Assembly (NCBI GenBank): GCA_024704765.1 | Contig: JAKMXF010000364.1 | Coordinates: 62,001-126,000, forward strand | Direction of reading: 5' to 3' | Source of the DNA: Oopsacas minuta | Lineage: Eukaryota; Animalia; Porifera | Length of the DNA stretch: 64,000 bases | Shown: piece by piece, positions 2,593-42,394 of the stretch | How positions within the stretch are numbered: the stretch's first letter is position 1 | How the letters are laid out: each line of letters opens with the position of its first letter | Notes under the pieces: generated by a model | What the model saw: the letters and a program-made list of their open reading frames with translations, nothing else | The model's database searches: none | What the model was told of the DNA's origin: nothing | Translations under genes and position numbers: made by a program

Positions 2593-3906
2593 CAGGGTGC
2601 GTTTTAAGTTCTGTCCCATCTTTATGTTTTATTGTATTATCTATATTCTAAGCATATCCTTAATACTACTATGTTGATTCTTTTACTATATTGTTTAGCT
2701 AGCACCTATACCTATTATACAATTCACCATTCTCACGTATTAGTATTTTCATTTGATGGAACACGAAAGGTCAGCTATTATTGAGTTAGCTAAAAATGGC
2801 AAGACTCAGAAAGAAATTTTGAAGTTGCTCAATATTCCCGCTAATAGACGTAAGTTTGTCTATCGTACGATTCGGAGGTACAACGAGACTGGGGAAGTTT
2901 GTGACAAAGCAAGAAGTGGTCGTCCCCCTTCAGTAACGACTCCAGCACTCCAAAAGTTGGTGCGGGAACGTATCCGTAGAAACCCACGGCGTTCTATGAG
3001 GAAAATGGCTCAGGAACTCAAAGTATCAGAGTCTTCAGTACGGAAAATTGTGAAAGTGAACTTAGGCATGCGTTCATTCAGAAGAAAGAGAGTTCACTTC
3101 CTAAGTGAGCAAGTAAAGGTCAAGAGGCTTCAAAGATGTAAAGGACAATTACGTAGGCACGTAAATCATGATATTAAAAAAATTGTATTCTCCGGCGAAA
3201 AGATTTTCACCATTGAGGAAGCTTTGAACCCTCAAAACGACAGGATTATATCACACAAGTCATCTACTATTGATCCAGATCTGAAGTACGTTCCTCGAGT
3301 CCAAAAACCACTTTCAGTAATGGTTTGGGCTGGAATATCGGCTGTTGGTCGGACGCCACTAATTTTTGTGCCAGCAGGCGTAAAAATAAACTCGACAACT
3401 TATCGTGACTTAATTTTAGAGCCCATAGTGAAGAACCTTAGCCAAACCATGTTTAATGGTGGGTCATTTGTATTTCAACAAGACGGAGCACCAGCTCACA
3501 CATCAGATGTTACCCAAACCTGGCTTCAGAGCAATATTCCATGTTTTATTGAGAAAGAGCAATGGCCTCCATATAGCCCAGACCTGAACCCAATGGACTA
3601 TTCGGTATGGTCCATTCTCGAAAGCAGAGTCTGTGCTAAATCTCACAAGAGTATAGACTCTTTGAAGCGAAAATTGCGAGAAGAGTGGGAGAAAATACCC
3701 CAAGATGTACTCCGTGCTGCAGTTGAGGCCCTACCTGGCAGGATATCAAGTGTCATTCATGACAAGGGAGGTTATATTGAGTAATCAGTGCGATTATGTA
3801 ATTGTATTGATCATAGTAAACTGGTATAAAAGTTTAAATAGTAAAAGATCTATTGTAGTAAAGTTATGAGGATTTGACTATGGGACAGAACTTAAAACGC
3901 ACCCTG
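2593..3906 (+). mobile_element. Tc1/mariner DD37D (maT-type) element nested in the P element
   Basis: 27-bp TIR CAGGGTGCGTTTTAAGTTCTGTCCCAT at both ends. TA TSDs at 2591-2592 and 3907-3908. Confidence 0.95.
2756..3784 (+). CDS. DD37D transposase, open frame but first catalytic Asp replaced by Gly
   Basis: HTH N-terminus, RSGRP linker, FSGEK (normally FSDEK), QDGAPAH, and SPDLNPMDY with 37 residues between the second and third acidic residues. Confidence 0.92.
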   Translation: MEHERSAIIELAKNGKTQKEILKLLNIPANRRKFVYRTIRRYNETGEVCDKARSGRPPSVTTPALQKLVRERIRRNPRRSMRKMAQELKVSESSVRKIVKVNLGMRSFRRKRVHFLSEQVKVKRLQRCKGQLRRHVNHDIKKIVFSGEKIFTIEEALNPQNDRIISHKSSTIDPDLKYVPRVQKPLSVMVWAGISAVGRTPLIFVPAGVKINSTTYRDLILEPIVKNLSQTMFNGGSFVFQQDGAPAHTSDVTQTWLQSNIPCFIEKEQWPPYSPDLNPMDYSVWSILESRVCAKSHKSIDSLKRKLREEWEKIPQDVLRAAVEALPGRISSVIHDKGGYIE

Positions 3907-3979: not shown

Positions 3980-6900
3980 ATGACATGCCTAGTACCTGGT
4001 TGTAAGTCGAATTATCACAGTCAAGGTGATTCATATGTGCCTACTTTTTCCTTTCCTACTGATGTTGAAACTCGTGAAAAGTGGTTTCGAGCGATCCCTC
4101 CACCGAAAGGAGACTATGAGGAGAATAAACGATTTTTGGTAAGTTGCTATAGAAATTTGTCTGTGATATAGTATAATTATTTCTATCTTTATAGGTCTGT
4201 ATACATCATTTCCGTGAAGAAGATATCGAGAGGAATATTGAATATTATAACGGAGTTGAGATGATCAAGATGCCCAGGAAAAAAGTTGTTCTTAAGAAAT
4301 TTGCAGTTCCTAGTATCTTTCCAAATTGTCCAACTTATTTCACAGATGCAGTTGCTAAAACCCAAAGGCTATCTCTAGACGATAAAGAGGAGAAGAGGAT
4401 GCAGGATGTATACAAGAAAAGTCGAACAGAATTTCAAGAGACAGGAGCTAAGTTCAGGATTTCGAGTCTTAGTTGTATTATATCTGAGTTGCACATGATC
4501 GAACTCCCAAACGGTTGGCTTTTCCATCGCCCTGATTCTTCTAACATACTATTTCTTAAGATTCAATTTTGTGATAAAGTTTCCACTATTGAACGATGTA
4601 TAATTGTCGATGAAAGTTTATTTTGTAAGTCTTTTTATAAAGAAAAGAACAAAATTCAGCTCTCGTCTTCCTCAATAAATGATATCAGGTTATTAGAAAA
4701 CATTATACATGAAGTTGATTTATTGAAATATCTCCAAGTACTAATACAAATACCTCTGCGACATCTCTGATACAACATGTGGAGAACTCTATTCATAGTC
4801 TTGGTCAAGCTATTGATACATTAGAGCACACTGATTCCAAATTATATTTCGAAATCGCTGAGGCTTCTTTACGAATGCGTCTTACTTTTTTACTCGATCA
4901 GTTGAAATATCTAATCATTGATAAACATGCTCGACGTTATAACATCATCACTCTGGTCTTTTGTTTAAAAATTCACGGCATTTCCCCAGCTTGTTACCGT
5001 CTCATTCAGGGCTCTAATTGCTTAACTTTTCCTCATGAGCGTAATTTGTTGAAAGTAAAAAATAGTATTGGCTTAGAGAGTGATTATACAAAAATTCTCA
5101 GGGAAGTTGCCACTACATTCAATAATTTAGAACGCCATGTTATTCTTCAAATGGATGAGGTACATATCCGTGGTGATGCATCATATAAGGGAGGGAGAGT
5201 AATTGGGTCGATTGACAATCCTAATGATCCATATACCACAGTTTTCTCCATGATGGTTTCTAGCCTATCGGCCAAGTTTTCTACCATTGTTCGGTTGATT
5301 CCTTTGGGTTCTTCTTCTGCTGAATCATTGTATCCTATTGTCAGGTCTACTATCTGTGATATCGAAGCTTGCGGTCTATTTGTAGAAGCTGTTTGTACTG
5401 ACAACTATCCACTGAACGTTCGTTTATACAAATTGTTTTCAACTAGTTCGAAACTGGAGCCAAAAGTACAACACCCCTGCAACCCACATAGAAATTTAAT
5501 TTTGCTTTTTGATAGTGTTCATATCATTAGGTGCATCCGAAATAATTGGTTGAATCTCAAAAATATTGACAACACTTTCATTTTTCCGAAGTTCGACGAA
5601 TGTCTAGTAAGTATTCAAAACATCATTGACACTAACAAAAATTTTTACCTCTCCATCCCTAGAGCCAGCATTTCTACTGCCAATTTGATCTCTAAATCTG
5701 TATATCCAGATATTTGTTACGCTCGATTTCAAGATATACGAGATTTGTTTAGATCGGATAGATGTAATTTATTGAAACGAGCACCAAAATTAACAGCGAA
5801 AGCTTGTTGGCGCTCAAGCTTAGAACGGAAAAATGTTAGTTTTGCATTGAAAATTTTTCATGAGACAACATCTGCTGGCCTATTAGCGTGGAAAATCGAA
5901 AATGACACCAAACACATCAATCAAACAGTAGATTTTCTTGATCTTATTAACCGGATATGGAAAATATTCAATGTGAACTGGGTTGGGAAAAATATACGTT
6001 TTAATGATGAATTTTCAGTGCCAATATACCCAGACGATTTTCGGTTGCTCTTTTTGAACAACGTGGTCTCCTGGTTGGATAGTTAGGTCAATCTACCTTT
6101 TTTGTCCGGAAAATTAACGCCACAAACCTTTACCAGCTTTAGACATACATGTGAGGCATTACCACTACTAGTCAAACAACTAACTGAAAATTGTGGGTAC
6201 CAATATCTTCTTACTGCGAGAATACAAAATGATGCTTTAGAACACCATTTTGGATTATACAGACAAATGTCAGGGTCTCACTATCAAATATCTTTTAACC
6301 AAGTTTTAGAAAGCGAACGAAGACTCCAACTTTCCAACCTTTTAAAAGTTTTTGATATAAAATATGGTTTGGCAGATAACGTTTCACTAAAAGAATCCCT
6401 TAGGCAATTCGCAGACGATTGTGAGTTTATAAGTGATGAAAAGCAACTCGATATAGAACCTTATATGACTATATTGAATGATATCTCGCTCATTGAATTA
6501 GAAGTTTCTCAGATTGAATGCCTCATCTAAATAGCAGGATATGCAGTCTTCTCTTACATAAAAAGTCAAATACTTGTCAATCTTGTTACGATCTTTTAAC
6601 AACAGATAGACTCCTAGAAGTTAATAATGACGTTGGTTCTCAATATACTTTGATTAATTTAGTAGATCGCGGTTCTCTTAAATATCCTTCTTCTTGTGTA
6701 GTAAAGTCTGTTACTATCTTGTATAGAGCCTTTCTGATGATAGATAACTGTAATTCCCTCAGCAAGAAATTCTATTCTGCACAGTCCCGTAGTTTGTTGG
6801 TACTCATTTCTATGACAATCATTTCAGAGAAATATACTGATGTTTGGAATGATTGTTGCTCCTGTGGCGTTTGGAATCGGGACATATTGAAGAAATGGTG

Positions 6901-7415: not shown

Positions 7416-8835
7416 GGTGTACTTACCAATAAATATGTGGGAATGTTTGAAATATAGTGTGAAATGTTGTATATTAAGCTTATCAAGTACAATCGGTTTC
7501 AATTGGCAATTGAGTGAAATGCTGTGTATAGAACAATAGTCCAGTGAATATAATCGTGCATTTGTAATTGAGTGACAAGCCTTGTATAGTATACTTTCAC
7601 AATTCTGTGTATTGAAATAGGAGTTGACTGTGAAATGTTTGTCTTTGCAGCTGGTCACTTCAAATTTGTTTCTTTTGATAATTCAGTGAAATTCTCCGTA
7701 TAGAACAATAACTCAGTGAGTGTCTTCTAGAATTTATAATTGTGTGACGAAACTATGTATAGTATACTTTCACAATTCTGTGTCTGAAATTAGTAATTGA
7801 CTATGACATGTTTGTCTAGTGCAGCTGGTCACATCAAACTTGTTTCCTATGATAATTCAGTGATATCCTCGGAATTGAACATTAGCTCAGTGAGTGCCTT
7901 CAAGCATTTATAATTGAGTGACACAACTATGTATAGTCTACATTCACAATTTTGGGTATTGAAATTTGTAATTGACTATGAATTGTTTGTCTAGTGCTGC
8001 TGGTAACTTCAAAATTGTTTCTTTTGAAAATTCAGTGAAATCCTGAAATTATAATAAGAGCTCAGTCAGTACCCTCGGACATATATAATTGAGTGACAAA
8101 ACTTTGTATAGTATACTTTCACAATTCTGTATCTGAAATTGGTAATTGCCCGTGAAATTAATATATAATTAAGGTGATCTCAAAAACTTTGTTTGTATTG
8201 TAATGTAGTGAAATCCTATCTTTTGAACTATATGCTAGGGATTATGTTGAGAGATTTGAAAATGAGTGACAATCCTTTGTATAGTGCACTCTCAAATTTC
8301 TGTGCGTGGAAATTTGAAATTGACATTGAAATGAATATATAGTTCAGTTAATCACAAATACCTTGTTTGTTTTGGAAATATGTGCAAAGCTGTGTTATGG
8401 ACATTACACTTGGGAATATGTTGTGAGAAATGATAGTAGTCGTTAATACTTTGTATAGTTTACTCTCAAATATCTGTGTTTGGAAATTTTGAAATTGACC
8501 TTGAAATGAGTATATAGTTCAGTTGATCACAATGCTTTGTTTGTACCGTAATGTTGTGAAATCCTTTGTTTTGAACTATATGCTAAAGATTATGTTGTGA
8601 GATTGGAAATTGAGTAACAATACTTTGTATAGTATACTTTCACAATTTTGTGTGTTCAATTTGCAATTGACTGTGAATGTTTGTTTAGTGCAGCTGTTCA
8701 CTTCATATTTGTTTTTTGGAAATTCCTTAAATCCTTTGATCAGAATAGTAACTCAGAGATTATGTTCCAACATTTGAAATTTAGTGAGATAATCTTGTAT
8801 AATATACTTTCACAATTTTGTGTTGGAATTAGAAT
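7416..8835. repeat. Satellite, ~174-bp higher-order unit made of three ~58-bp monomers (right block)
   Basis: tgtatagtatactttcacaatt at 7583, 7756, 7930, 8105, 8278, 8452, 8626, 8796. Internal sub-repeats at ~57-59-bp steps. Continuous with the sequence left of the P insertion. Confidence 0.88.
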
Positions 8836-8945
8836 GTAAGTAAATAAGGCTAAATACTAATCCACCTGCGTATTACCGCAAATCATGCAAAACCTTAGTT
8901 ATCCAACATTCTGATCATTATTGAGGGTATTATATATGGTGGAAT

Positions 8946-8975
8946 CACGGGTAACTGAAAAAACATTATGGGAAA
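8946..8975 (+). repeat. Candidate left TIR of the Chapaev element
   Basis: CACGGGTAACTGAAAAAACATTATGGG, a CAC-start terminus ~430 bp upstream of the Chapaev ORF. No partner end found. Confidence 0.35.
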
Positions 8976-9376
8976 AAAAATGAGGTCGTTGAGATTTTTT
9001 CACTTTCTTAAACAGAATTTTATGAGGAATCCGAATATACACACCAAAATCTTTCCTAACATTAAAATCTTTTTTCAGATTATACAAAAATTTATGAAAT
9101 CAAAAAAATTCTGGCTATAATAATTTTAACATATCCCCATTTTTAATATATTATCGTGATTCTTCGCTGATATACTTCTTTCTAGAATACAATTTAATTA
9201 CTAGTTACCTAATAGAATTGATGTTTTAACATAATCCTATCCAAAATGTCATTATCATGGCAACAAAATGAAACGTAGGAATTTACGCAATAGTTTTCAA
9301 TCTAGCTAAGTAGTACTTGTATGATATTACATTTAGGATATATACGTGTAATTATTGATTAATTCAGTTAAAGCAA

Positions 9377-11376
9377 ATGGGTGTAGAAACGAAACATGAA
9401 CATGCAAAAACTAGAATTTGTCGCTGGTGTTGTTCAAAAGTTGGCAAAATTATTTTGAGGAATAATCACCTAAAGGACCCTAAGTTAGGTGAATCATATA
9501 ACCAATATTTGGAACCACTCAATATTATAGAAGATAATCACCCTTATATCGTGTGTAATACTTGTAAACTCTACTTGTTTACTCTGTCCTTTGGGGATAC
9601 GACGAGGAAAACACCCGCACGATATGATTGGCCCATTATTCGTAACACGCGCTTAAACACCTGCCGCATTGGGAACTTATGTTCAATGTGTACCGAGAGT
9701 TCAAGATTCCGTCGCAAGAATCAAGCTTCATCTTCGATAATCCATATAAAGCCAGGAAGACCAACAATCAATTCACCTTATAAGACGATCAAGTTATGCG
9801 ACAAATGTGCGAGTCGTGTTAGTCCTGGAGTTAGTCATATCTGTTTGAAAAAGACATTGATTACCAACGCACATAATATGTTGGAACACCATAACGCTAT
9901 TGATACATTCGTTGGTGATAATGTATACCAAAGATTACATGAATGTAGCCATAAAAAATCTTCAATTCAGTTGCCTAAAACTTCAGGTGGGAATCCGTTT
10001 CATCTTTCTGTCCCCTCTTCCAGTACTGACGAACGTCCAGCTAAATTACCAAAAATGGATTTCTCTCACATCACGAATTTGAAGTGTTCAGGAATGTCAT
10101 TGTCCATTAAGCAGTTAAAGGTAGTAAATCGAATTATTAGAGATGTTGAAGTACCATGTCCATCAATGGATAGCTACTATAGAGAACGACATTTGTTGTG
10201 CGACGAAATATTCGAATGCATCCAGATTGAGCTGGACTATAGTAAAGAGAAATACAAGTCAGAATATAGGAACTCCTGGATAGTGAGATGTTGCGATATC
10301 GATGCCCTGATAGAAAAGATCTTTAATATCAGCAGAGAAATATCGGTACATGATCTTCATTTCAAGCTTGGATTAGACTTTGGTCGTGGTTTCACTAAAC
10401 TACTTATGTGTCTACAGAATGATAATTCTGTCGACCTGGTTTATCTATGGTTACGAGTGTCCCTGAGTGTAATTATAACTTCTCCGTTATGCTTCAAGAT
10501 GACCAGATAAAACGGCTGATGGAAGAATACAACGTTTCATTTACGGAAAATTTGAAAGCTGCTGGTTATTGCTTGGGAATAATGAACGGACGTCACCCTT
10601 GTATATGGTGTACTTGGGACAATAGAAGGGGTTTAGACAGTGTTCAGTGGGAAGAACGATCATCTGCTCACCATCTAGAGATGTTTCAAAATCTTCAAGA
10701 TATGTATCAGGGAGATTCTAAGAATCATGCAATTGACTGCGATGGTATTGAGGATCGCCAAGCACTAAATGTATGGCTGGTAGATTTCATGCAAATGTTT
10801 AATCTTCCTGAGTTACATCTGTTACTTGGGATAGGACAGAAGTTATACGATGCCATCCTTATCACAATGTCTGAGGACGAAAAAGAACACCATGAAGCAA
10901 TACTAAAAAAACTGAATATTCATAGAAGTGCTTACCATGGAGGAGCATTTGAAGGTAATGCAATGAGGAAAATCACAAAGGAGGTATTGGAACTCGGGTT
11001 TCCAAAAAGTAATTCCTCTTATATCACGCTTGTAAAATTCAGGTGTGTTGTTGATTCTTGCTTCGGGAAACACATAAAGGGAGATTTCAAAATGGCAATA
11101 TATCATTTTGAACAAACATTTAAACAATCAGGACTTTCTTGCTCTACAAAAGTTCATGTCCTATGTAGGCACCTAATTCCGTTTAGCACGAAACATCTTC
11201 CAGATGGAATGGGTTTAGGATCAGTTTCAGAACAAGCATTTGAATCTGCCCTTTCTAGATTTGGCAGAGTTTGGGAGACAAGATATAAATGTCAAGAGGA
11301 AAATGAAAAATTTCCAGAGTGCTTATTAAACACAGTATCAGATGTTAACTTCGTCAATTTCATTAATAAATCATAG
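9377..11376 (+). pseudogene. Chapaev (CMC superfamily) transposase, one frameshift (~10445)
   Basis: N-terminal H..CRWC...CNTC zinc finger. KLGLDFGRG (D), TENLK (D->N), PCIWC, PELHLLLG, YHGGAFEGN, KVHVLCRH, GLGSVSEQAFES (E). Confidence 0.8.
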
Positions 11377-11388
11377 TATGGTAAGCTA

Positions 11389-12778
11389 CGGTCTGTCAAC
11401 TTGAAATTGGGAAAATCTTTTTCGATGTTAGAATGTTCCTAATTGCATTTTCAAATTGGTTATCGTAATAATATTGATAATTTGTGTTTTTCAACTATTT
11501 CTAGTTATTTCTTAGCCAACTGAACTTCTCTAGCTGACTGTGGTTACAAAATATTTCAATTTATACTTAGTTACTAATCAAATATTCTATGTAAATATTT
11601 ATCACTTGAATTTCTCGCAACACTTATATATCTTCGCTAATAATTTTTTACTTTCATCAATTCAAAACCTTAAAATGAAAGAGCAAGAACAGCGTAACAA
11701 TATCAAGATACTTTTTGACACAGAAATCACGAATTGTATGGAATTATCTCGAAGAACTGGAGTTCCAAAAAGTACAGTTTATCGCACTGTTTACAAATTG
11801 AGGAATGCTGAATCCATTGATAGAAAGATTGGTTCCAGGAAACAGCGTCAGATCAAAGCAAATAACGCTAGATCACTTGTTAGTTTGGCAATCAACAATC
11901 CTAGGTTATCTGTGAGGAAGTTTACTTGCAAATTTAACAAAAGGCGGGGTCTATCGTTCTCACACGAGGCTGTAAGGATTGAGATGAAGCTGCGTGGCTT
12001 CACTCGCAAGGTTGCTAGAAAGATTCCGATGCTTACACAAACCCATAAGGCTTATCGTGTCGATTGGGCTAAGTCTAACAGATGTAGAGATTGGGAGAAA
12101 GTGATATTTAGCGATAGCGATGAGATGTCCATTTGGTTAGCTGGTAGCAGAGTATGTGTCTGATGTAAAGGTGATTCGAAACCAGTAAAACCCAGTACGA
12201 AACACTCTCCTAAATTGCATGTTTGGGGAGCGTTTTCAGCACGTGGAACGTTTCCTATCAAGGTTTTCAGAGAAAATCTCACCGGCGACTTTACTGCGAC
12301 ATTCTGCACGAATGTTTAGTAGGACAAGCAAGTGTCTTATACCCTGATGGATAGGTTTTCCAGGAAGACAATGATCCCAAACACACGTGCAACCTTGCTA
12401 AAGGATACATGGAGGAGAAAGGGATACATAGGATGGATTGGCCTGCTTGTAGTCCGGATTTGAATCCGATCGAGAACCTCTGGCCGTGGATCAAGAGAGA
12501 AATCGATTTGAAGTCACCACGAAATTTAAATGAGCTGGAAAGGGAGCTAAATGAAGTATGGAATTCTTTGGAACATGAATTTTTACGTCCATTTTGGTCA
12601 TCGATGCCAAAAAGAGTCAAATTAGTACGGAAAAGTAACGGAAATAAGATAAATTATTAGGCCTACTCTATTATTGATTGTTTAAGGATTCTAATAACAT
12701 ATTTAGAATAGAAATACACTAAATGTACTTGTAGCTAGGGAAAAACAAAGATCTTCCCAATTTCAAGTTGACAGACTG
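11389..12778 (+). mobile_element. Tc1 DD34E element, transposase pseudogene (~11675-12660)
   Basis: TIR C(G/A)GTCTGTCAACTTGAAATTGGGAA(A/G)ATCTTT with TA TSDs. VIFSD(SD)EMSIW, QEDNDPKH, SPDLNPIENLW (34 spacing). Stops and frameshifts present. Confidence 0.92.
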
Positions 12779-14859: not shown

Positions 14860-16429
14860 TTAACGGTAAGTGACTTTCTATGCGTATAGTTTGACACTTT
14901 CCAAAGAATTTCGGAATTGGTCTTCTATCTGCTTATGCTGTCATATCACATATACTATTAAGCTTCCTTCCAATATGCTTGTCTCGCAATATCGTAGGGA
15001 AATAAGCCTAATAAATGAAATAGAAATAGTCAGAGACTCCGAAGCATTGTCAATTGGGACTTGCGTCTCTTATCATTTTATCCTTAGTCTGACCATTCAA
15101 CGCTTGCTTTCAACATTAGACCCAGTTCCTGATTCACACTACCCACTAAAATTAAGATATCTGATTGATTGGATGGCTCCGGTTGTCGTCAAACCTATGA
15201 CCAACAAAGCAACAATTCTGTATTAAGCACAAAAAACTTTCATTTTGTTCGGATTCAAAGTAATATCAATTACAGACACACTTGGAAATGGCGTGTTCTA
15301 TAACAGCTCACTCAACCTTTCCATTCTGCTTTAGGCCAGTAGCACTGATAGCTTTGAAAGAAGAATATTCTAGGGTAAAGCTTATCATAGATACAATAGT
15401 CAATCTTCAAACATACCATATCATACAGGATGGGTTATCTCTTATTGGAAGCCATGCACAGGTCGAGATGGTCCGTTCCCTTTTTGATACCAAGATGGCA
15501 GGATTGCTGGATGGAGCTGGTGTTGCTTTTTGTTATCTGTGTATTGCAATGGATAGCCAAATTAAAAGTTTAGAATGGCCCCGTTCTGGTTTCCTTATTA
15601 ACAGATTAACTAGTGATGCTCGGCAACTTTTTGAAGAGGTTGGAGAAGATTAATTGAAACTCCCATCAAATCAACGTGTTGGTATTACGCATCAACCAAC
15701 TTCTAACATCAATATTATAGCTGCATCTCCTTTGCATGCTTCCCTTTGTGTATTCAGGTGGTTCATGCTATTGATATACCATCTTGATGCAGGACACAAG
15801 GTGCGGGCACCATTAAACTTGAAAGTAAATTCTTCTATGAAACGGGTCCAAGCTAAATTCCAGGAAAAGATGTAACTTCAGTGTCGATATTCTTCCAAGC
15901 CAGGGCGGCACTTCAACTACTGGTAACATTGCGCAAGACTGCTTTCTAAATAAGAGAGACCTGTTGATCTGGGTCACCTATTCCATTAATCCTTCAGATA
16001 AAGTATCATTAGAGAAGATCAGACGAATTTATCTGTTTTGTTAAGACTCCTCAACAGTGTTGACTGGATTAACTGTGACCAAATGCAAGAATTGTGCAAA
16101 GAAACGTGCGAATTTATTCTAGTTAAGTACCCATAGGCAAGCATCACTCCCTCCTTGCGCAAGTTACTTGCCCATATTCGTTTCAGTTAATAGGTGCTTA
16201 CAATAATGGTAAGGGATTACAGAATCTCTCTGAGGAACGTTTAGAACCCTGCAATAAATTTGTAAGGCGGCATCGGGAGAATCTTGCAAGAAAAAATTCT
16301 TTCACAGATAATATTAGAAATATTTTGGTCAGGTTGTTATATTGTAGTGACCCCATCTTAGTACAGAATCGTTTGAAGCAGGCAAAGAAGAAAAGAGACG
16401 TTGCAAATAGCCTCCAAGAAGTATTATAA
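14860..16429 (+). pseudogene. RAG1-core-like/Transib transposase relic (copy C, no zinc tail)
   Basis: D*LDGSG (~15165), SLFDTKM, CYLC, ASPLHASL, GGTSTTGNIAQ, ITPSLRKLLAH, LSEERLEPCNKFVRRHRENLARK, SDPIL. Collinear with the 32331 ORF. Confidence 0.88.
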
Positions 16430-16723
16430 AATAGTATACTATCAGATGATTTATGATAATAAGTATATCCAATAGTCATACATAATTAAGGGTCTTTAAA
16501 TTGTACGTTATCAAATAGCAGAATAGAGACCATGACATGCATGTATTATCAACTTTCATAACATCCTTACTATTGAACCACAATTGTTAAAAATTAAAAA
16601 ATGTCGGTAATTACGTCGTAACTAGGTTTATAGTTGTACTACTAAAGAATTATTTGTATTTTTGAAATCTAGAATGTCGATTTAGTATATGCAAGTATAA
16701 TTGTGGTGATATTACAGATTCAT

Positions 16724-16762
16724 TTACCTATTTCCCCATTATGGCCATTTTGCCACACGGTG
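16724..16762 (-). repeat. 3' TIR of RAG1-like copy C (heptamer-23-9mer)
   Basis: Minus strand reads CACCGTG TGGCAAAATGGCCATAATGGGGA AATAGGTAA. Confidence 0.8.
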
Positions 16763-23509: not shown

Positions 23510-24990
23510 CACAGTGATTTAAAACGGGATTTGGTAAGGAATAGGCAATTATACGAGTCCTATCGTTGTATAATGTATTATTTCCTATATATTATCGATA
23601 CCTACGAGTCGATTGCGAGTAGTTATTTTCTTTGAAGATGTCTACATTTTCTTGATATGAAGTCATTGGAGTGTTAAAATTCACTTAAAATATGAGTTAG
23701 TAATAATTGATTCAGCAATAGACTCAAATCATTTCTACACATGACTATAAATCTACTTATCTAGACAAGTATACCAACTATGTGGGCCAGGTTAAGGAAC
23801 GAATAGAGCATCTATATTAGATGGGTGTTGGATACTATCTTGTTTGCAACAATTCGATAACGATGAATGACCAGATTGACTACATATTTCACACGTTCAA
23901 TTTAGCCGAGAGCTTCCATAAATAGGATCGCTCAGGCAGGCTAATCATAAGAAAACATTCATAAGATTAGTCCCGAAACTATTTCCTTGCCACATTTTCC
24001 CGATATTTTGAACAATTTGTCCGAAGATTCTGTCCCTTCTTTAGAGAAATCCTTCAATCCGAATCCAACATTGGACTCTCAAATTAACTCCCCAGAGTGG
24101 GTTAGTATTTTGTTTCATGTTGGTGTGATACTTGCCCAGAGAAATGAATCAAAATCAAAAGATGAGTATTTTTGCACAGATTCCCCAATTCTGGGGTGTT
24201 GACTTTCCTGCTTGAAGTATATTATTTGAGGATTGTAGAAAGTTGTATATGGATTTTTGTTAAAGCTGGTTAATGGCAATTACAATGGTAGATAATACAC
24301 ATTTTAGATAATCAGTTTGGTCAGAAAAGGCCCTTCGAGCAAAATTCTCGCTAGAAGTCGTTCCGCCGCTGGGGTCAGGTAGGTCAACTTTCAAACCAGC
24401 TTTCCTGATTATGAGATTCCATACACTTCATGGATTCTTTAATAGTTAGAGAGTTTTAGGCCTACTCAGTTTATTGATATGAAGATGATATACCAAAAGA
24501 TTATACTACCTAAATTGTTCAAAATCCTAAATAGTAAATTTTCTATATTTTCATAAAATATTTTCACCGAAGATGCATGTATACGAATAAAGTAGAGATG
24601 CTGAAGTTATGTTGATAGTACAGATGGGTGTATGGTTAAGTTAAAACGATCGTTTGATGGAAGTGCAAATAATGAATCAATATCATCAATATCTAAGAAT
24701 AACTGAGCAGCATCTGTAATTTTTCTTTTGATAGGGAATCCATCAGTTACCAATTCTCTGTCGTTCAAATCTTTATGTGTGGCTGTACACATTAGGCAAC
24801 TTGCGCCTCCAGCAGTAGAAAGAATAGCTGATATCTTCCCGTCAAACCATAGATCATACGATATCAACAATAATTAAACTACCTTCTATATATATGCTTT
24901 CTCCAAACTTAGATGTTTCTGGATTGATAACATCGTCCGTGAATGTACGAATATTTGCTTCGTATTACTTCTCAGTATACAGAAAGATGT
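23510..24990 (-). pseudogene. RAG1-like element copy B: C-terminal half of transposase plus 3' TIR
   Basis: Minus strand DGKISAILSTAGGASCLMC, GGTTSSENFARRAF, ITPT*NKILTH, SKEGTES, and tail CEICSQSGHSSLSNCC (23846-23893). TIR CACAGTG ATTTAAAACGGGATTTGGTAAGG AATAGGCAA at 23510-23548. Confidence 0.88.
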
Positions 24991-31308: not shown

Positions 31309-31770
31309 AGGGTTCTATCTACTGGGGGGTGGGGGGAAGCTTCCTCCCCAAACTCTTCAGCTTCCCCCCCAAAATCTCATAAATTGTACTAGTAATCGCA
31401 ATATATTATTCAATAGATAAATTATTAGAATATCAATTCATTGTGAAAATACTATTTGAAATGTAAATAAATAACATGTGGGAAACTTGAATCACATTTC
31501 ATACTATTTGCAACTGGGAAATAATAACATATGTTGGAAAGTACACACAGTAGTTTGAATGCAAAGAATAGACAAAAAATAGATTTCATTATTAATGGTT
31601 TGAACTCGTTCTTGTTTGTTTGAATAATGTTAATTTCAAATTTCAATTCGATCGAATACATATAGCTCTCACAATATGAATTTAAAGAATCAATCAAAAA
31701 TAGTTCTATTTGCGGTTTCAGTGATGCTAATATTAGCACCAATTTAAGTTTACTTGAGAGCGTCACAGAA
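31309..31770 (-). mobile_element. Possible hAT 3' fragment
   Basis: FKLLCVL...PVANSMKCDSSF resembles a hAT dimerization domain. CAGGG-start GC-rich terminus at ~31309. Confidence 0.35.
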
Positions 31771-32330
31771 TTCTCCGAATCAAATTTATTTTATTTCGTC
31801 AACACAATTCAGTTATGCTAAATCTGATTTCTCATTTTCGTCAGTGTATCTTTATTACATTTGGATTCAAAGTTGATTTGATTAATGGTACTTTAGAGGT
31901 ACAATATTTTTAAAAAAGAACTTCCAAATGGCCGCAAAAAAAAAAAACATCACAAAACACAACTTAGAAATTAATTCCAAAATGGCATTATAATATCTAG
32001 AAAGACATATTAAAATGATACGCCCCGAAACAGTGCGCAACATGAAAATTTCTAGCGAATTCCATTGTCACCTTTTTGTTGCTATGCAATTTATATGCTA
32101 AATTTATCTACTCGATTGCAGCATTCCAATTACCAATAAATGTAATATATAAATACATGATTAATATGACATTAACAAATTGAATTTGCTGATAATCAAC
32201 CGTTTTCTACGCTTTTATCAATGACTCAAGAACTAACTTTCCCTAACTCTCATCTTGAATTTGCGAAGATTTTGAAGACAACAACAACTGTATCTCGACG
32301 ACACTCAGTTTCTTTGAGCAGAACTTTCAA

Positions 32331-34415
32331 ATGGACTTCGAAGAAAGGAAACAATTGGAAGCAACGCTCCTCCGAGTAAGAAGCAGGATCAGGAAGGCAA
32401 AGAAATCGCTAGATTGCTTAGAGGGAGACTGGTGGCATTGTGGTATATCCATGGAACCAGAGTTGAAGAGGAACCGTTTTTATGATACCGTTGAGCTGTC
32501 TTCAGATGATGAAGAAGTCATATCCACACTCTCTGCAAACCATAGGAAGAGTATTGACAATCTCACGATGCAACAACAACGCTCACGACTCTCAAATGTC
32601 TTGGAATCTATCAAAGCACTCTCAATCGTTGAGAATACTTCAGAAATCAAGATAGCTGCACTTGCCTTGCAACTACTATCGAACCAAACAAAACAGCGAG
32701 AAATAGCTAAAGTTTCAAAATCTGTAGTCTATGACAAGTTTTCGGGTCAATTCGGTAAATTGTTGAAGAAAGAGCTCGATGTTACCAAGACAGTGTTCCT
32801 TGTAGATCTCCTAGAAATTGGCAGGAGGAAATACACACAACTCCGACATCACTTGCTATCTAGCGATATTCGTTTCCCGGCATACTATAGGGTAGTAGAA
32901 GAAAGAAACAGTATAATTTTACGGTCGGATATTCAGATGTACCCCAATCCTGAAACTCCACTTGGTGTATATATACCATATGCCCATCACGTCCGCCATA
33001 CTTTTTGCAGGATTATGTCCACGCTACCGCCACCTCCAGCTCAAGATTATCCCCTACAATTCCAGATAGCAGACGGACTAGATGGCTCTGGAAGTCACAC
33101 TGTATATAATCAATCAAACACGAATACAGATACTAAGTCGTTTATCTTATTCTGTTTCAGAGCTGTAAAGGTAATAAGCAATAGCGGTCGCGAACTCTGG
33201 AAAAATAACGCTCCCAATTCTCCTTTTGCTCAACGTCCGATTTTCCTCCTCGCTGCGAAAGAAAACGAAGCTAATATCAAGCGATTTATGGACGATCTAA
33301 TCAATACTGATACTGATCTTATGAGAAGTGAAGGATTTACTCTTGGCCCTGATCAGCAAGTACGAGTCGACATTGTTCGATCAATACTTGATGGGAAAAT
33401 GGCAGGAATTCTATCTGGAGCAGGTGGGGCAAGTTGTCAATTATGCACAGCAACTCATAAGGAACTCAGTGATCGTGAGTTGATAATACAGGGATTTCCT
33501 ATCAACAGGCACATTACTGATGCAATTCAACTTTTCTGTGAAATAGAAGACAGCCATTCGTTCTTCTCACTCCCTTCAAACCAACGTTGTAACATAACGC
33601 ACGAACCAACCTCAACAATAAACATCCTTCCAGCATCTCCGTTACACTCGTACACTGGCATTTTCAGGTGGTTCAATCTACTAATTTATCATATGAATTG
33701 TGGAAAACCCACATGGTCACCGACATCTTTGACGATAAAAAATTCAATGATATTTGTCAGAAATCTGATTGGAGGGAAGACAGGAATGAGGATAGATCAG
33801 CTGAATGCAAGTGGAGGTACTAGCTCTACTAGTAGTGTAGCTCGTCGAGCATTTTCCTGTGATTCGAAATACATTGAGTGTGTATTGTCAGTTGTTGAAA
33901 CAGAACACAAAGAAACACTTTCAAAACTACATACACACTTGTCAGCTATTCTTCGAATAATCAATTCAGACAGGATCATTAACACCGAGGTCTTTGGTGA
34001 TCTATGCACCGATACATATCTCTTGATCGTTGATTCATTACCTTGGGTGAGCATTACTTCAACATTACACAGGGTATTAGCTCACTCAGAGGAAATTTTG
34101 AAAGGGTCCAACCTTGGGCGAGGTCTGAAATGTTTCTCTGAAGAGGGATCCGAGGCATGCAACAAGTTACTAAGAAAGTATAGGGAGAATCTTGCAAGGA
34201 AGTCTTCATTTGAAGATAATCCAATGGACATTATCGTGAGACTGGCCTCTGAAAGTGACCCTGTATTGAATCAATTTCGTTCAAGTTTAGTTTGTGAAAG
34301 GTGTGGGGAACACGGCCACACAAAAAGAGCAAAGTGTTGTAGGGATAATACCGAAAATAGATTACTAGATTCTTCCATAGACGAAATTGTTGATTCACTT
34401 ATAATTAATTCATAG
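32331..34415 (+). CDS. RAG1-core-like (Transib/RAG1L) DDE transposase, 694 aa
   Basis: NBD-like aa ~72-128 and DDBD-like aa ~148-196. DGLD251GSG, NSPFAQRPIFL, ILD354GKM, C369QLC372, SPLH439, VARRAF, TLH580RVLAH585, SEEGSE608ACNKLLRKYRENLARK, SDPVL, and tail C655ERCGEHGHTKRAKCC670. Confidence 0.93.
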   Translation: MDFEERKQLEATLLRVRSRIRKAKKSLDCLEGDWWHCGISMEPELKRNRFYDTVELSSDDEEVISTLSANHRKSIDNLTMQQQRSRLSNVLESIKALSIVENTSEIKIAALALQLLSNQTKQREIAKVSKSVVYDKFSGQFGKLLKKELDVTKTVFLVDLLEIGRRKYTQLRHHLLSSDIRFPAYYRVVEERNSIILRSDIQMYPNPETPLGVYIPYAHHVRHTFCRIMSTLPPPPAQDYPLQFQIADGLDGSGSHTVYNQSNTNTDTKSFILFCFRAVKVISNSGRELWKNNAPNSPFAQRPIFLLAAKENEANIKRFMDDLINTDTDLMRSEGFTLGPDQQVRVDIVRSILDGKMAGILSGAGGASCQLCTATHKELSDRELIIQGFPINRHITDAIQLFCEIEDSHSFFSLPSNQRCNITHEPTSTINILPASPLHSYTGIFRWFNLLIYHMNCGKPTWSPTSLTIKNSMIFVRNLIGGKTGMRIDQLNASGGTSSTSSVARRAFSCDSKYIECVLSVVETEHKETLSKLHTHLSAILRIINSDRIINTEVFGDLCTDTYLLIVDSLPWVSITSTLHRVLAHSEEILKGSNLGRGLKCFSEEGSEACNKLLRKYRENLARKSSFEDNPMDIIVRLASESDPVLNQFRSSLVCERCGEHGHTKRAKCCRDNTENRLLDSSIDEIVDSLIINS

Positions 34416-34683
34416 ATTCATTAAAATGTTGAATCTATACATTCTGATCCAAATACTATACAGGGTAATAGTATACATACAGAGTAAGAGATTTTTCTTA
34501 TGAAGTGGAAATTTCTATGAGTTTTATTGAATAATTTTTTAAATGTGACGTCATCATAATATGTGATGACGTCATATCCAGAAATCTAGAAGCCATAGAA
34601 GAAATTTGATTACCCCATTCGATTCCTCAGATACGATAACCTATTCGCAAATAATACATTGCATATGGCTATCTGGTACTAGA

Positions 34684-34722
34684 ATACCTATTCTTTACTA
34701 ACTCCCATTTTAAACCACTGTG
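34684..34722 (-). repeat. 3' TIR of RAG1-like copy A (perfect RSS heptamer)
   Basis: Minus strand reads CACAGTG GTTTAAAATGGGAGTTAGTAAAG AATAGGTAT, ending ~300 bp after the stop codon. Confidence 0.88.
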
Positions 34723-34919
34723 CTTACTAATGAACCACAATTGTTAAAAATTAGAAAATGTCAGTAATTACGTCATAGCTAGGTTTATAGTCGTGCTACT
34801 AAAAAATCATTGGTATTTTTGAAACCTACAGTGTCGATTTAGTATATGTAAGTATAATTGTGGTGATATTACAAATTCATTTACCTATTTCCCCATTATG
34901 GCCATTTTGCCACACTGCA
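34723..34919 (+). repeat. Second copy of the copy-C 3' terminal ~197 bp, including its TIR
   Basis: Aligns by eye with 16566-16762 (cttacta.tgaaccacaattg...ccccattatggccattttgccacac). The heptamer reads TGCAGTG on the minus strand. Confidence 0.85.
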
Positions 34920-35034: not shown

Positions 35035-36300
35035 CACGGTGGGAAACATGGCTGATTAGGGTAAAAATTTCATATTCAAAGCTCCAAGAAAGTCGTATTT
35101 CTGAATTCATCATAGTTGGAAACACATAATTATGTATTTTGATGCAGAATTTTCGCTTGCTCATGACTGTGCTATGAGCAGATAGTGAAGTGAAAATTCT
35201 CTTGATATCAGGAATGTTATTAATTCTAATAATAGCTACTTTCAAAGTAATTTTCCATGGTTAGTTGGAATGGGACATAACCGTTTTGTATATAATGTAA
35301 TCAATATAGCTTTTCTATAATCATAGAAAATGTTTGCGTACATTCTGTTACAAAATGCTTTATAAAGACCATTATTACCGAACTACTAAATATAGAATAT
35401 GTTAGATTGAACGAATTAGAAACTGGGCCAAACTATTTTCGAGGGCACTCGAGGCCGAATGGTTTTATGGCTGAAACAGTTAGAGAAGATGTTTGCCTTC
35501 AAGATTTTACTAGTTATAGGATAGCAAAACGTAGCAATCGTGACCATAACACCAACGAAAGAATGCGAAACCTTCTGGAGGAATTTTAAAGTTAATTTTT
35601 TATGTGATAATTAGCTAATTTGAAGATTGAAATGCACTAATGTAATCGAAATAACAAATAATATTATCTAGAATTAACTTTTATCCTGAAATCAGAGCAT
35701 TTCAAGGGTGCATGTTGAAATATTTATGGACAAAGGCCAAATATCCTTGCATTCCTTTTTCAATGTCTGATGAAATTTTATCACCCATCAATTTATCTCC
35801 CATGCCCTCTTCATAGTTATTTGTGTGTCTTACGCTGTCTCATACTATTGATATATCATTTGGATGGCGGAATGAAGAAAGGCTGCTTTCACATCATCAA
35901 GTTAAAACTATGTACCGATTGAGTAATCTCACGCTTGAGAAGACTGCGTTTCAAATAGATTATCCATTCGGTGAATACGGTACCTCTACCACTGGTAATA
36001 TAGCAAGAAAATGTTTTCTCAATGAAAAATATTTTATTGCTTCTGCTACATCCACGATGATTGAAGAAGACCGACTTACTCTTAACACTATTCAAACAAA
36101 TCTCTCAGTAATATTGCGGGTTTATAATTCTCATAAAAGGATAGACATTGATAAACTCTACTCCAATTGCAAAGATACTTATGAGGAAAACCTTGTAAAT
36201 TTCCTTGGGAAAGCATTACACCGTCTCTTCGTAAAATATTTACGCATTCTTCAGAATTAATCAGTGGATTAAATGACGGTTTCGGATTGAAGTTTCAGTT
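35035..36300 (+). pseudogene. RAG1-like copy D: candidate 5' TIR plus internally deleted transposase fragment (~35770-36300)
   Basis: CACGGTG GGAAACATGG... at 35035. CPLHSYLCVLR..LIYHLDGG, YGTSTTGNIARKCF, ITPSLRKIFTH. Confidence 0.75.
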
Positions 36301-40595: not shown

Positions 40596-42394
40596 GGACA
40601 ATTTGTCGCATGGACAATTCGTCGCGGACAACTCGTCTCGTGGACAATTCGTCGGGCGGAAAAAGGAAAAAAATTAAGATAGTAAGCAGTAAATGGAAAT
40701 GATACTTATGATACTTAGTATATGATGTAAATATTAAAAATCAAAATTATATGCTATCTCTCAAAGATATTCGATGGTTTCGCAATTATCATATTTGATA
40801 ACTATGTTCTATATCCTTTCTTCATGTTCCACACTCGATTTTGATCGCTGCCCTTCAGATTTCCTCCTTCCCACTTTGCATAAATTGCCTCTTGAAGTGA
40901 TTGCTCTTTTTGCAAAATTCTTAAGAGTTTTATGAAATCTGGGTGTGGATGACCCTTGCCATGACTAAAAGCATTGTGCCAACCTTCAACGCTATTATTT
41001 TTTCGAGGGATTCGATCCATCATTCTTTGATGCATGTTCCATACTCTGATAGGAAAAGGTGGCGTCCTACGAGACTATTTGGTAGCTATTTTCCAATATA
41101 GTTGTCTTCAATTATTTTGCAACTGTCTTCCCAGATTGAGGATATTCATGCATCAAGATGTTAAAACAATCAATAACATCGCTCTCAGGCACGAAAGCCA
41201 GGCAGGGTAACATCTTCAGCTTCAAAGCTAAATCCCTATCTTGTTGATGCGCCGTAGCTAATCCATTAGCTTGAATTCTCCGATAAATGCTCTGTTTTAA
41301 GTGGAAGAAACATCCATAGACACATGCAAGGAAAGTATTTTCCAATGCATTTATCGCGGCCTTATCGAAATCCACCATTATGGGTGTAGGATTTAATTCG
41401 GACTCTAGTTGGAGCAGTTTGGAGAGCATTCTTTCATAGGTCTCTTCAGTCTTAGCCTGAAATAAAGCATAAACACAAGGGAATATATATCCATCTCTTT
41501 GTGCATGGATAGTGTAAAGTTGAAAGAAATGTTCTGGAGCAACTTTATATGTACCATCACAGTGCCAGTTGATACTTTCTTTAAGTTTAGATAAAAACTT
41601 TGAAGTTCCAAAGAGAATCATTCTGTGATCATCGCCTTCTCCTGAATCAAATAATAGGAAGCTTTCATCATTGAGTGTAAATTTAAATCTATCTGGAATT
41701 ATTATTTCAGCGCAAGAACTTGGGTTTCCATAAAATTCTTCTTCTCTTCTCTTACACCTCCTAATAGTTCTCTTGACAGAGTCAAGCGTTGGTAATTTGT
41801 TAATGGATTCTGCTGTCATTCCTTCTACTGAAGTTGCAAGGAGATTTCGGGTACTTAATTCAGAATTTCGAGCTATTCCTTTGAGGTTCGTATACCCTCT
41901 TAGCATCTCGACACGAGTTATATCAGAACTATGCGAATGCTCACTTGGTATTATTGAAGGATTTGTAGGTTTGACTAATTGATTATTACTTGTGTGTAGC
42001 CTCGCTTTGCAGATTCCGCGCTTTTCACACACCCAGTATTCGATATCGTGAGATTTTCAATTCAAAGTATAAATAAAACCTTGAATGCTTGCTTTATCTT
42101 TATTTATTTCACTCGGAATCCTCTCAATCGAACACGAAGAGGTTAAGGAAGTAGCCATAGTTTCTTGGTAGTAGTAAGACTTTTTAAATCCCCATTATTG
42201 GCTGATTTTTATACTATTTTGATCATGTTACAATAGACAACATACCAACCAGTTGACAATGCCAAACTTCAAGAGTGGGATATAAACAATTTACCTTTCA
42301 CAACCTCAATCAATACTTCTTATGAAACAAAGGCTAAATAGCGAAGTCATCAACAGCGACAAATTGTCCATGCGACGAATTGTCCCTTTACCCC
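40596..42394 (-). mobile_element. MULE (Mutator-like) FLYWCH-DDE transposon, pseudogenised (CDS ~42158 to ~40720)
   Basis: YWVCEKRGICKARLH...HSH (FLYWCH), WHCDGTYKVAP, IMVDFD, GCFFHLKQS, NNSVEGWHN. Terminal GGACAATT(C/T)GTCGC repeats are inverted at the two ends. Confidence 0.88.

Follow-up and report, generated by a model that had tools for sequence, protein, structure and literature searches.

A probable Transib transposon of the glass sponge Oopsacas minuta encodes a single RAG1-like protein with a nonamer-binding-like domain and a zinc tail

The 64,000 nt of Oopsacas minuta DNA analyzed here (GCA_024704765.1, contig JAKMXF010000364.1, positions 62,001–126,000 of the forward strand; hereafter the window, numbered from its first letter) are AT-rich, with about 35% GC, and contain a RAG1-like open reading frame (ORF) of 694 amino acids inside a single-gene element of 3,177 bp. 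We put a probability of roughly 0.85 on this element being a copy of a Transib-superfamily DNA transposon of the autonomous, cut-and-paste kind, from a lineage that diversified in this glass sponge and in related assemblies and that encodes one RAG1-like protein and no RAG2-like partner. This reading draws on the anatomy of the element, its homology and fold, the architecture of its ends, the target-site duplications (TSDs) of its relatives and the absence of a second gene. An initial annotation of the window had described a RAG1L-only element and a candidate intermediate between Transib and RAG1-RAG2 transposons. The lack of RAG2, the nonamer-binding domain (NBD) as a true homologue and the CCGHC zinc tail held up; the RAG1L-only label and the novelty of the intermediate were not supported.

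The limits of the element (Table 1) are marked in several ways. The terminal pattern CACAGTRGTTTRAA is found at 31546 (+) and 34722 (-), with a chance expectation of 0.1 matches. Homology to L002, a 97% identical O. minuta copy at another locus with its own TSD, and to L001, an element from an ENA assembly whose protein is 74% identical, ends exactly at these two bases. Read contigs from four public runs (X1–X4) split into many different flanks directly after 34722. Both ends start with a CACxxTG-type heptamer, CACAGTA at 31546 and CACAGTG, in reverse complement, at 34722. The ORF, present in the ORF list where it had been annotated, is preceded by 785 bp and followed by 307 bp from stop codon to element end, and the list holds no other ORF between 31546 and 34722. 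These parts fill the element and leave no room for a second gene, in agreement with the earlier estimate of about 300 bp and no space for a RAG2L gene ahead of the 3′ terminal inverted repeat (TIR).

The catalytic and zinc-binding residues lie at the positions first assigned to them, and none of D251, D354, E608, C369, C372, H439, H580 and H585 varies in an alignment of 36 sequences that extends down to 22–31% identity. HMMER pairs the catalytic and zinc residues with D600, D708, E962, C727, C730, H937 and H942 of RAG1. Pfam gave a RAG1 match below threshold only, and the precomputed database annotation of relatives is PF26100 RAG1_RNase_H. In phmmer searches of PDB sequences, HzTransib (E 1.8e-20) ranked ahead of BbeRAG1L (2.8e-7) and RAG1 (about 5e-4). 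A family profile, whose alignment with RAG1 is colinear over the stretch between NBD and RNase H domain, returned 9.3e-44, 3.7e-17 and 7e-15, respectively, and scored 153 bits for HzTransib versus 65 and 58 bits for RAG1/BbeRAG1L. An AlphaFold2 model built from the 36 sequences had a mean pLDDT of 84.9 and a pTM of 0.75. Its top Foldseek match was again HzTransib (E 1.3e-24, TMt 0.84, 22% identity); about 45 RAG1 chains and BbRAG1L came next. In VIA-align, HzTransib reached Z 32.8 at 23% identity over model residues 146–694, RAG1 reached Z about 29–31.4 and BbRAG1L Z 27.8, the last two at 15–16% identity each; model residues 68–654 align with RAG1 391–1008. Sequence and modelled structure both place the core nearer to HzTransib than to RAG1 or RAG1L. 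In phmmer, the window protein does not stand out from other Transib-like proteins in its nearness to BbeRAG1L: bit scores against HzTransib and BbeRAG1L were 76 and 32.5 for the window protein, 57 and 38 for relative P0086, and 70 and 21 for P0190.

The domains run from a short N-terminal helical segment and an NBD-like domain through DDBD, pre-RNase H, RNase H and ZnC2, the last with an α11–α12-like segment, to ZnH2, CTD, CCGHC zinc tail and terminal helix. No RING or zinc-finger match was obtained in Pfam, and no N-terminal non-core region of the RAG1/RAG1L type was found. The roughly 105 residues ahead of the NBD (32331–32540 plus 32221–32330) are conserved across the sponge families, with a near-invariant tryptophan, W35, and no Pfam match.

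The NBD had been proposed from an alignment by eye. HMMER reproduced it, pairing RKSIDNLT with RQHLLSLT of RAG1, and in the model residues 68–72 onward align with RAG1 391–393 onward. A profile of the N-terminus only, built from 15 close relatives, matched only RAG1 chains in the PDB, led by the crystal of the isolated NBD (3GNA, E 0.003). With 34 sequences and 76 positions, 3JBW and 3GNA were matched at E 1.6e-4 and 2e-4, respectively, and the top 16 matches were all RAG1; the first unrelated match had E 0.083, and the NBD* of BbeRAG1L had E 1. The model places helices at residues 80–100, 105–120 and 123–133, with block-mean pLDDT values of 78–90. Structural alignment to NBD-bearing RAG1 chains starts at model 68–74 and RAG1 391–395 and gains about 60 aligned residues, compared with a start at model 146–148 (RAG1 459–461) for NBD-less chains. 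Taken together, the profile searches and the full-length model, on which the fold assignment rests, argue that the three-helix domain N-terminal to the DDBD is a homologue of the RAG1 NBD (residues 389–464). The GGRPR hook is not conserved; the sponge family carries S-x3-[RK][RK]-x-[LI] at that place. GRP is present in the distant relatives P0190, P0130 and P0213, as MGRPRKSL in P0190.

Between C372 and H439, the sponge profile has 49 positions versus 14 in HzTransib, and the segment is colinear with BbeRAG1L. Its likely equivalence to the α11–α12 region of RAG1 was judged from alignment lengths, not residue-level superposition; 488 of 507 model residues were aligned for RAG1 and 468 of 549 for HzTransib. 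The predicted zinc tail was confirmed as a Cx2Cx3GH..C knuckle: CERCGEHGHTKRAKC in the window protein reads Cx2Cx3GHx5C, and relatives have x4, that is, one residue fewer. A conserved terminal helix (residues 682–690) follows the knuckle, and the alignments with BbRAG1L and HzTransib reach model residues 678 and 694, respectively. More distant relatives were surveyed among the best 150 of 2,211 database representatives (979 of the 2,211 at E up to 1e-10), of which 49 were long. Nearly all 49 have a C372–H439-equivalent segment of 64–84 residues, about half have a recognizable zinc knuckle, and an NBD region is present in most full-length ones. The architecture is thus widespread rather than particular to the window element.

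Six element families were delimited (window/L002, L001, L003, L004, L005 and L006), with proteins 40–74% identical to that of the window. They share an end code made of the heptamer CACAGTG, a conserved GGTTTA and a distal RRGRARTWG. The distal motif occupies positions 18–26 in 5′ ends and 27–35 in 3′ ends, which sets spacers of 10 and 19 bp in every pair, and the offset is exactly 9 bp in all six families. The 7/10/9 layout of the 5′ TIR recurs in L001, L003, L004, L005 and L006; the 7/19/9 layout of the 3′ TIR recurs in the same five and at window position 23510. A second A-rich 9-mer, AAAAAATAG, follows the distal motif in 5′ TIRs (window 31574–31582, L001 5304–5312). It lies at positions 29–37, near the motif position in 3′ TIRs, and an A-run at these positions is also seen in L003, L004 and L006. 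Perfect 5-bp TSDs flank five of the related elements: TAAAG for L001, CTATG for L002, AACTA for L003, GTCAG for L005 and CTTCG for L006. Elements with mapped ends measure 3.2–3.5 kb, L002 being longer solely through a nested insertion.

A RAG2L gene within the TIRs, by which RAGL transposons are recognized, was found neither in the window element nor in the related elements. Two ORFs were considered as RAG2L candidates and rejected. A 489-aa ORF inside L002, for which Pfam gave no match, is part of a nested CACTG...CAGTG element, and a 400-aa convergent ORF beside L003 lies outside the TSD and is a USP54-like host gene. The nested element is a 2.7-kb insertion that splits L002 at 7741–10461, has the ends CACTGCTCAACAA...TTGTTGAGCAGTG and carries its ORF on the opposite strand; its ends and protein motifs look Chapaev/CMC-like. 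The ratio of nonsynonymous to synonymous substitution rates (dN/dS) was 0.13 between the window copy and L001 and 0.59 between the 97% identical window and L002 copies, as expected for a transposase that is selected during spread and decays after insertion. In a tree confined to database relatives of the window protein, 15 close relatives formed one clade (SH-aLRT 100) among many Transib-like lineages.

Martin et al. (2020) separate Transib from RAG1L by an identity under 22% and by the lack of an N-terminal non-core region (PMC7204232). By these criteria, the sponge protein is a Transib, with 15–16% identity, no such region and no second gene. Kapitonov and Jurka (2005) had found the terminal motifs of the RAG1 nonamer-binding region conserved among Transib transposases, and had described 12/23-like ends for some Transib families (PMC1131882). 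Tao et al. (2022) defined Subgroup I Transibs by asymmetric TIRs, the α11–α12 region and the CTT1 tail, reported NBD-equivalents in both Transib subgroups, found the α11–α12 segment lost only in Subgroup II and called Subgroup I "intermediates" (PMC9435367). Martin et al. (2023) stated that Transibs are known with each of three features: asymmetric TIRs, a CCGHC tail and a GRPR/K-bearing NBD (PMC10462144). All four Subgroup I hallmarks (asymmetric TIRs, α11–α12 equivalent, CTT1 tail and NBD-equivalent) are found in the sponge element. The initial suggestion of a new step between Transib and RAG is anticipated by this work, as the same features were published for Subgroup I Transibs that already bear the name of intermediates (PMC9435367, PMC1131882, PMC10462144).

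An alternative history would make the element RAGL-derived and not a Transib, its RAG1L gene having lost the RAG2L partner by secondary reduction. We regard this as very improbable. In its favor, the protein has an NBD, a segment that in RAG1 contacts RAG2 and a CCGHC tail of the kind typical for invertebrate RAG1L, and an origin of Transib from RAGL was raised as a possible scenario by Martin et al. 2020 (PMC7204232). Set against these points, identity is 15–16% to RAG1/BbeRAG1L versus 22–23% to HzTransib, the profile scores differ in the same direction, and neither RING/ZDD nor any other non-core N-terminal region was found. The related families examined are all single-gene, the architecture is common among the 49 distant relatives, and bacterial and Subgroup I Transibs carry the same features (Tao et al., PMC9435367). 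The RAG1L-only label fails on similar grounds: the greater nearness of the core to HzTransib, a similarity to BbeRAG1L no higher than that of other Transib-like proteins, the missing N-terminal region of the RAG1/RAG1L type and an architecture common to the long relatives.

For the Transib reading, homology with RAG, BbeRAGL and HzTransib suggests how domains could be linked to end motifs, how ends could be paired and what activity could follow. A transposase dimer would bring together a 5′ end, in which 10 bp separate heptamer and distal 9-mer, and a 3′ end, in which 19 bp separate them. The CACAGTG heptamer would be read by the catalytic core, the adjoining GGTTTA probably by the zinc tail and the distal RRGRARTWG probably by a hinged NBD dimer, whose reading of that motif would enforce 10/19 pairing in the manner of the 12/23 rule. 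Cleavage would proceed via nick and hairpin, and integration would produce the 5-bp duplication. We tentatively propose, at less than even confidence, that an NBD dimer lacking GRPR, together with a CCGHC tail, reads a strict 10/19 rule without a RAG2-like partner, and that the family is still mobile. A rule of the 12/23 type would then belong to the RAG1-like subunit alone and be older than RAG2L capture. Many near-identical full-length copies and perfect TSDs occur in related assemblies.

The window copy itself is damaged. Relatives P0001, P0005, P0006 and P0010 have about 37 extra N-terminal residues; in the window copy, the codons that follow ATG 32221 are out of the ORF frame in three-frame translation. 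Alignment with L002 and L001 shows that an AAA run has lost one A after 32274, and the apparent start codon, ATG 32331, is ATT in the 97% identical L002 and TTA in L001. Each of the four runs has contigs with the extra A, which shows that the deletion is absent from other copies. In run X4, most depth is without the extra A, and based on this result the 1-bp deletion is probably real and not an assembly error. The description of this copy as uninterrupted is thus correct for the RAG1-core-like part, which is open from NBD to tail, and incorrect for the ancestral first 37 codons, which the deletion cut off. Because these codons are lost, no TSD is present and the copy sits in a nest of dead transposons, it is probably not a source copy.

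Several observations weigh against the Transib reading as a whole. The copy has the N-terminal frameshift and lacks a TSD (GTACA on the left versus CTTAC on the right), and no RNA run shows the element. Neither a GRPR/K hook in the NBD nor an A/T-rich distal motif is present, so binding of the NBD to that motif can only be proposed. Assignment to Subgroup I follows from features in the sequence and not from a tree with Subgroup I/II, RAG1L and RAG1 references. No kelch or RAG2-like gene was detected in the tested window ORFs or beside seven related elements, and elsewhere in the genome no search was made. The transposase might alternatively need a RAG2-like partner that another part of the genome supplies in trans, for which the retained equivalent of the RAG2-binding α11–α12 region could speak. 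HzTransib is active without RAG2 (PMC10462144), the same segment occurs in RAG2-less bacterial and Subgroup I Transibs (Tao et al.), and these points, with the absence of a kelch gene at the loci just named, leave a partner in trans only a slim chance, slightly below that of a RAGL origin. As a separate observation, across window 31400–34900 the ORF has a summed contig depth 10- to 1000-fold above that of ends and flanks in runs X1 and X4, and X2 and X3 are flat. Transcripts could account for the excess, and so could many copies that are related internally.

A long open frame among broken neighbors might also be explained by domestication, with a Transib-derived host gene kept for a cellular function. 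This is the least probable of the alternatives, with a chance close to nil. Both TIRs are intact, and the sequence occurs in multiple copies next to many different flanking sequences. One paralogue, 97% identical, lies elsewhere and has a TSD of its own, dN/dS between the two copies is 0.59, and the N-terminus is frameshifted.

Table 1. Coordinates of the element, its parts and other transposon-derived features in the window
Feature	Position	Strand	Remarks
Whole Transib-type element	31546–34722	+	3,177 bp, single gene; from terminal pattern, homology limits and read-contig divergence
ORF, 694 aa	32331–34415	+	RAG1-like (Transib) transposase minus first 37 ancestral residues
5′ TIR core	31546–31571	+	heptamer CACAGTA 31546–31552, 10-bp spacer 31553–31562, distal 9-mer AAAGAATAG 31563–31571
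3′ TIR core	34688–34722	-	heptamer CACAGTG 34722–34716, 19-bp spacer 34715–34697, distal 9-mer AAAGAATAG 34696–34688
NBD-like three-helix domain	32544–32735	+	residues 72–135; no GRPR, ANHRKSI at that place
Catalytic span	33081–34154	+	D251 (33081), D354 (33390), E608 (34152)
Zinc ligands C369/C372	33435–33446	+	
66-residue segment C372 to H439	33447–33644	+	putative equivalent of RAG1 α11–α12 (RAG2-contacting) region; absent in HzTransib
H439	33645	+	
Zinc ligands H580/H585	34068–34085	+	
C-terminal zinc knuckle	34293–34340	+	CERCGEHGHTKRAKCC; CCGHC / CTT1 type
Remnant of ancestral N-terminal 37 codons	32221–32330	+	ATG 32221; frameshift; TGA 32256–32258 in main frame
Fragmentary Transib-like copy	14945–16372		
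Fragmentary Transib-like copy	23834–24988	-	
Fragmentary Transib-like copy	35803–36292		
Other transposase ORF	2753–3784		Tc1/mariner-type (helix-turn-helix, HTH, + DDE_3)
Other transposase ORF	4779–6086		TNP-like RNase H (P-element-like)
Other transposase ORF	11540–12163		Tc3-type HTH
Other transposase ORF	41112–42032		MULE

The window is a transposon graveyard. Its other Transib-like copies are fragmented, as had been stated of the neighboring transposases, and ORFs of further transposase types are scattered through it (Table 1). The right flank of the element, 34723–34915, is 92% identical over 193 bp to 16566–16758, where another Transib family has its 3′ terminal part, ending in CACACGGTG, and this homology begins at the first base past the 3′ TIR. 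The end of that family, ...GGCCATTTTGCCACACGGTG, lies at 16762, and its heptamer is degenerate at 34919 (34723–34919 compared with 16566–16762). Nesting of the element inside a short derivative of this other family was considered and rejected, since the right flank agrees with it and the left flank does not. The left-flank continuation obtained from contigs, GCTTCCCACTA..., has no match in the window, and a comparison of the two flanks of the element revealed nothing else in common. A rearrangement or aberrant event likely lies behind the abutting right flank and the missing TSD. The 5′ end of a different Transib family (CACGGTGGGAAACATGGC...) was also seen at 35035–35075, about 770 bp upstream of the Transib-like coding remnant at 35803–36292; this terminal sequence resembles the reverse complement of the end at 16762.

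Herein, a known kind of Transib that keeps RAG1-type accessory domains is reported from a host phylum, the sponges, that appears to be new for it. No publication on sponge Transibs was found, and sponges are unmentioned in the RAG and Transib papers cited here and the supplements consulted with them. The O. minuta genome paper reports 15.4% DNA transposons and makes no mention of RAG1 or Transib. Our results extend to glass sponges the host range of Transibs in which NBD, α11–α12 segment and CCGHC tail are all retained. In this one lineage, the spacer asymmetry of exactly 9 bp (10/19) was kept while the proteins diverged to about 40% identity, so that nature here provides matched enzymes and substrates with which the rise of spacer rules in the absence of RAG2 could be tested. 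Should the 10/19 reading be true, the pre-RAG2 state could be modeled experimentally with this family. The accepted view of how RAG arose is unchanged; each feature had been published for other Transibs.

Among known systems, Subgroup I Transibs (ctenophores, Hydra Transib-9 and bacterial Transib) share the four hallmarks and the lack of RAG2 with the sponge element; they differ in host phylum, and the sponge NBD is without conserved GRP positions. HzTransib of Helicoverpa zea (PDB 6PQN/6PQX), the best match in sequence and structure, shares the DDE/zinc core, CACxxTG heptamer ends, a 5-bp TSD (seen in relatives of the sponge element), a single gene and independence of RAG2. Unlike the sponge protein, it starts at the DDBD (model 146 corresponds to Hz 21) with no NBD, has about 35–50 residues fewer between ZnC2 and the conserved histidine, and belongs to Subgroup II with a CTT2 tail according to Tao et al., whereas the sponge protein carries a CCGHC knuckle. 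BbeRAG1L of ProtoRAG (RAGL-B; PDB 6B40) has the same fold (Z 27.8), an NBD that also lacks GRPR/K and a tail of the Cx2Cx3GHx4C type, which in BbeRAGL binds heptamer-adjacent sequence; ProtoRAG likewise has a conserved stretch directly after the heptamer. It differs in its convergent RAG2L gene, long N-terminal RING/zinc region, nearly symmetric TIRs and only 16% identity. PflRAGL-A of Ptychodera flava (Martin et al. 2023) resembles the sponge element in its NBD, CCGHC tail, conserved region beside the heptamer and asymmetric TIRs, with a 10-bp difference in PflRAGL-A; it differs in having RAG2L, an NBD with GRPR/K, an A/T-rich nonamer and a place in the RAG1L clan. Vertebrate RAG1 needs RAG2 and has the GGRPR hook, an A-rich nonamer, an acidic tail and 12/23 spacers, whereas the sponge element, 15% identical, has a zinc knuckle and 10/19 spacers. 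The RAG1 core is nevertheless colinear with the sponge protein from NBD to CTD, with the same DDE and zinc ligands, and in both systems the ends are bipartite and the two spacer lengths lie roughly one helical turn apart.

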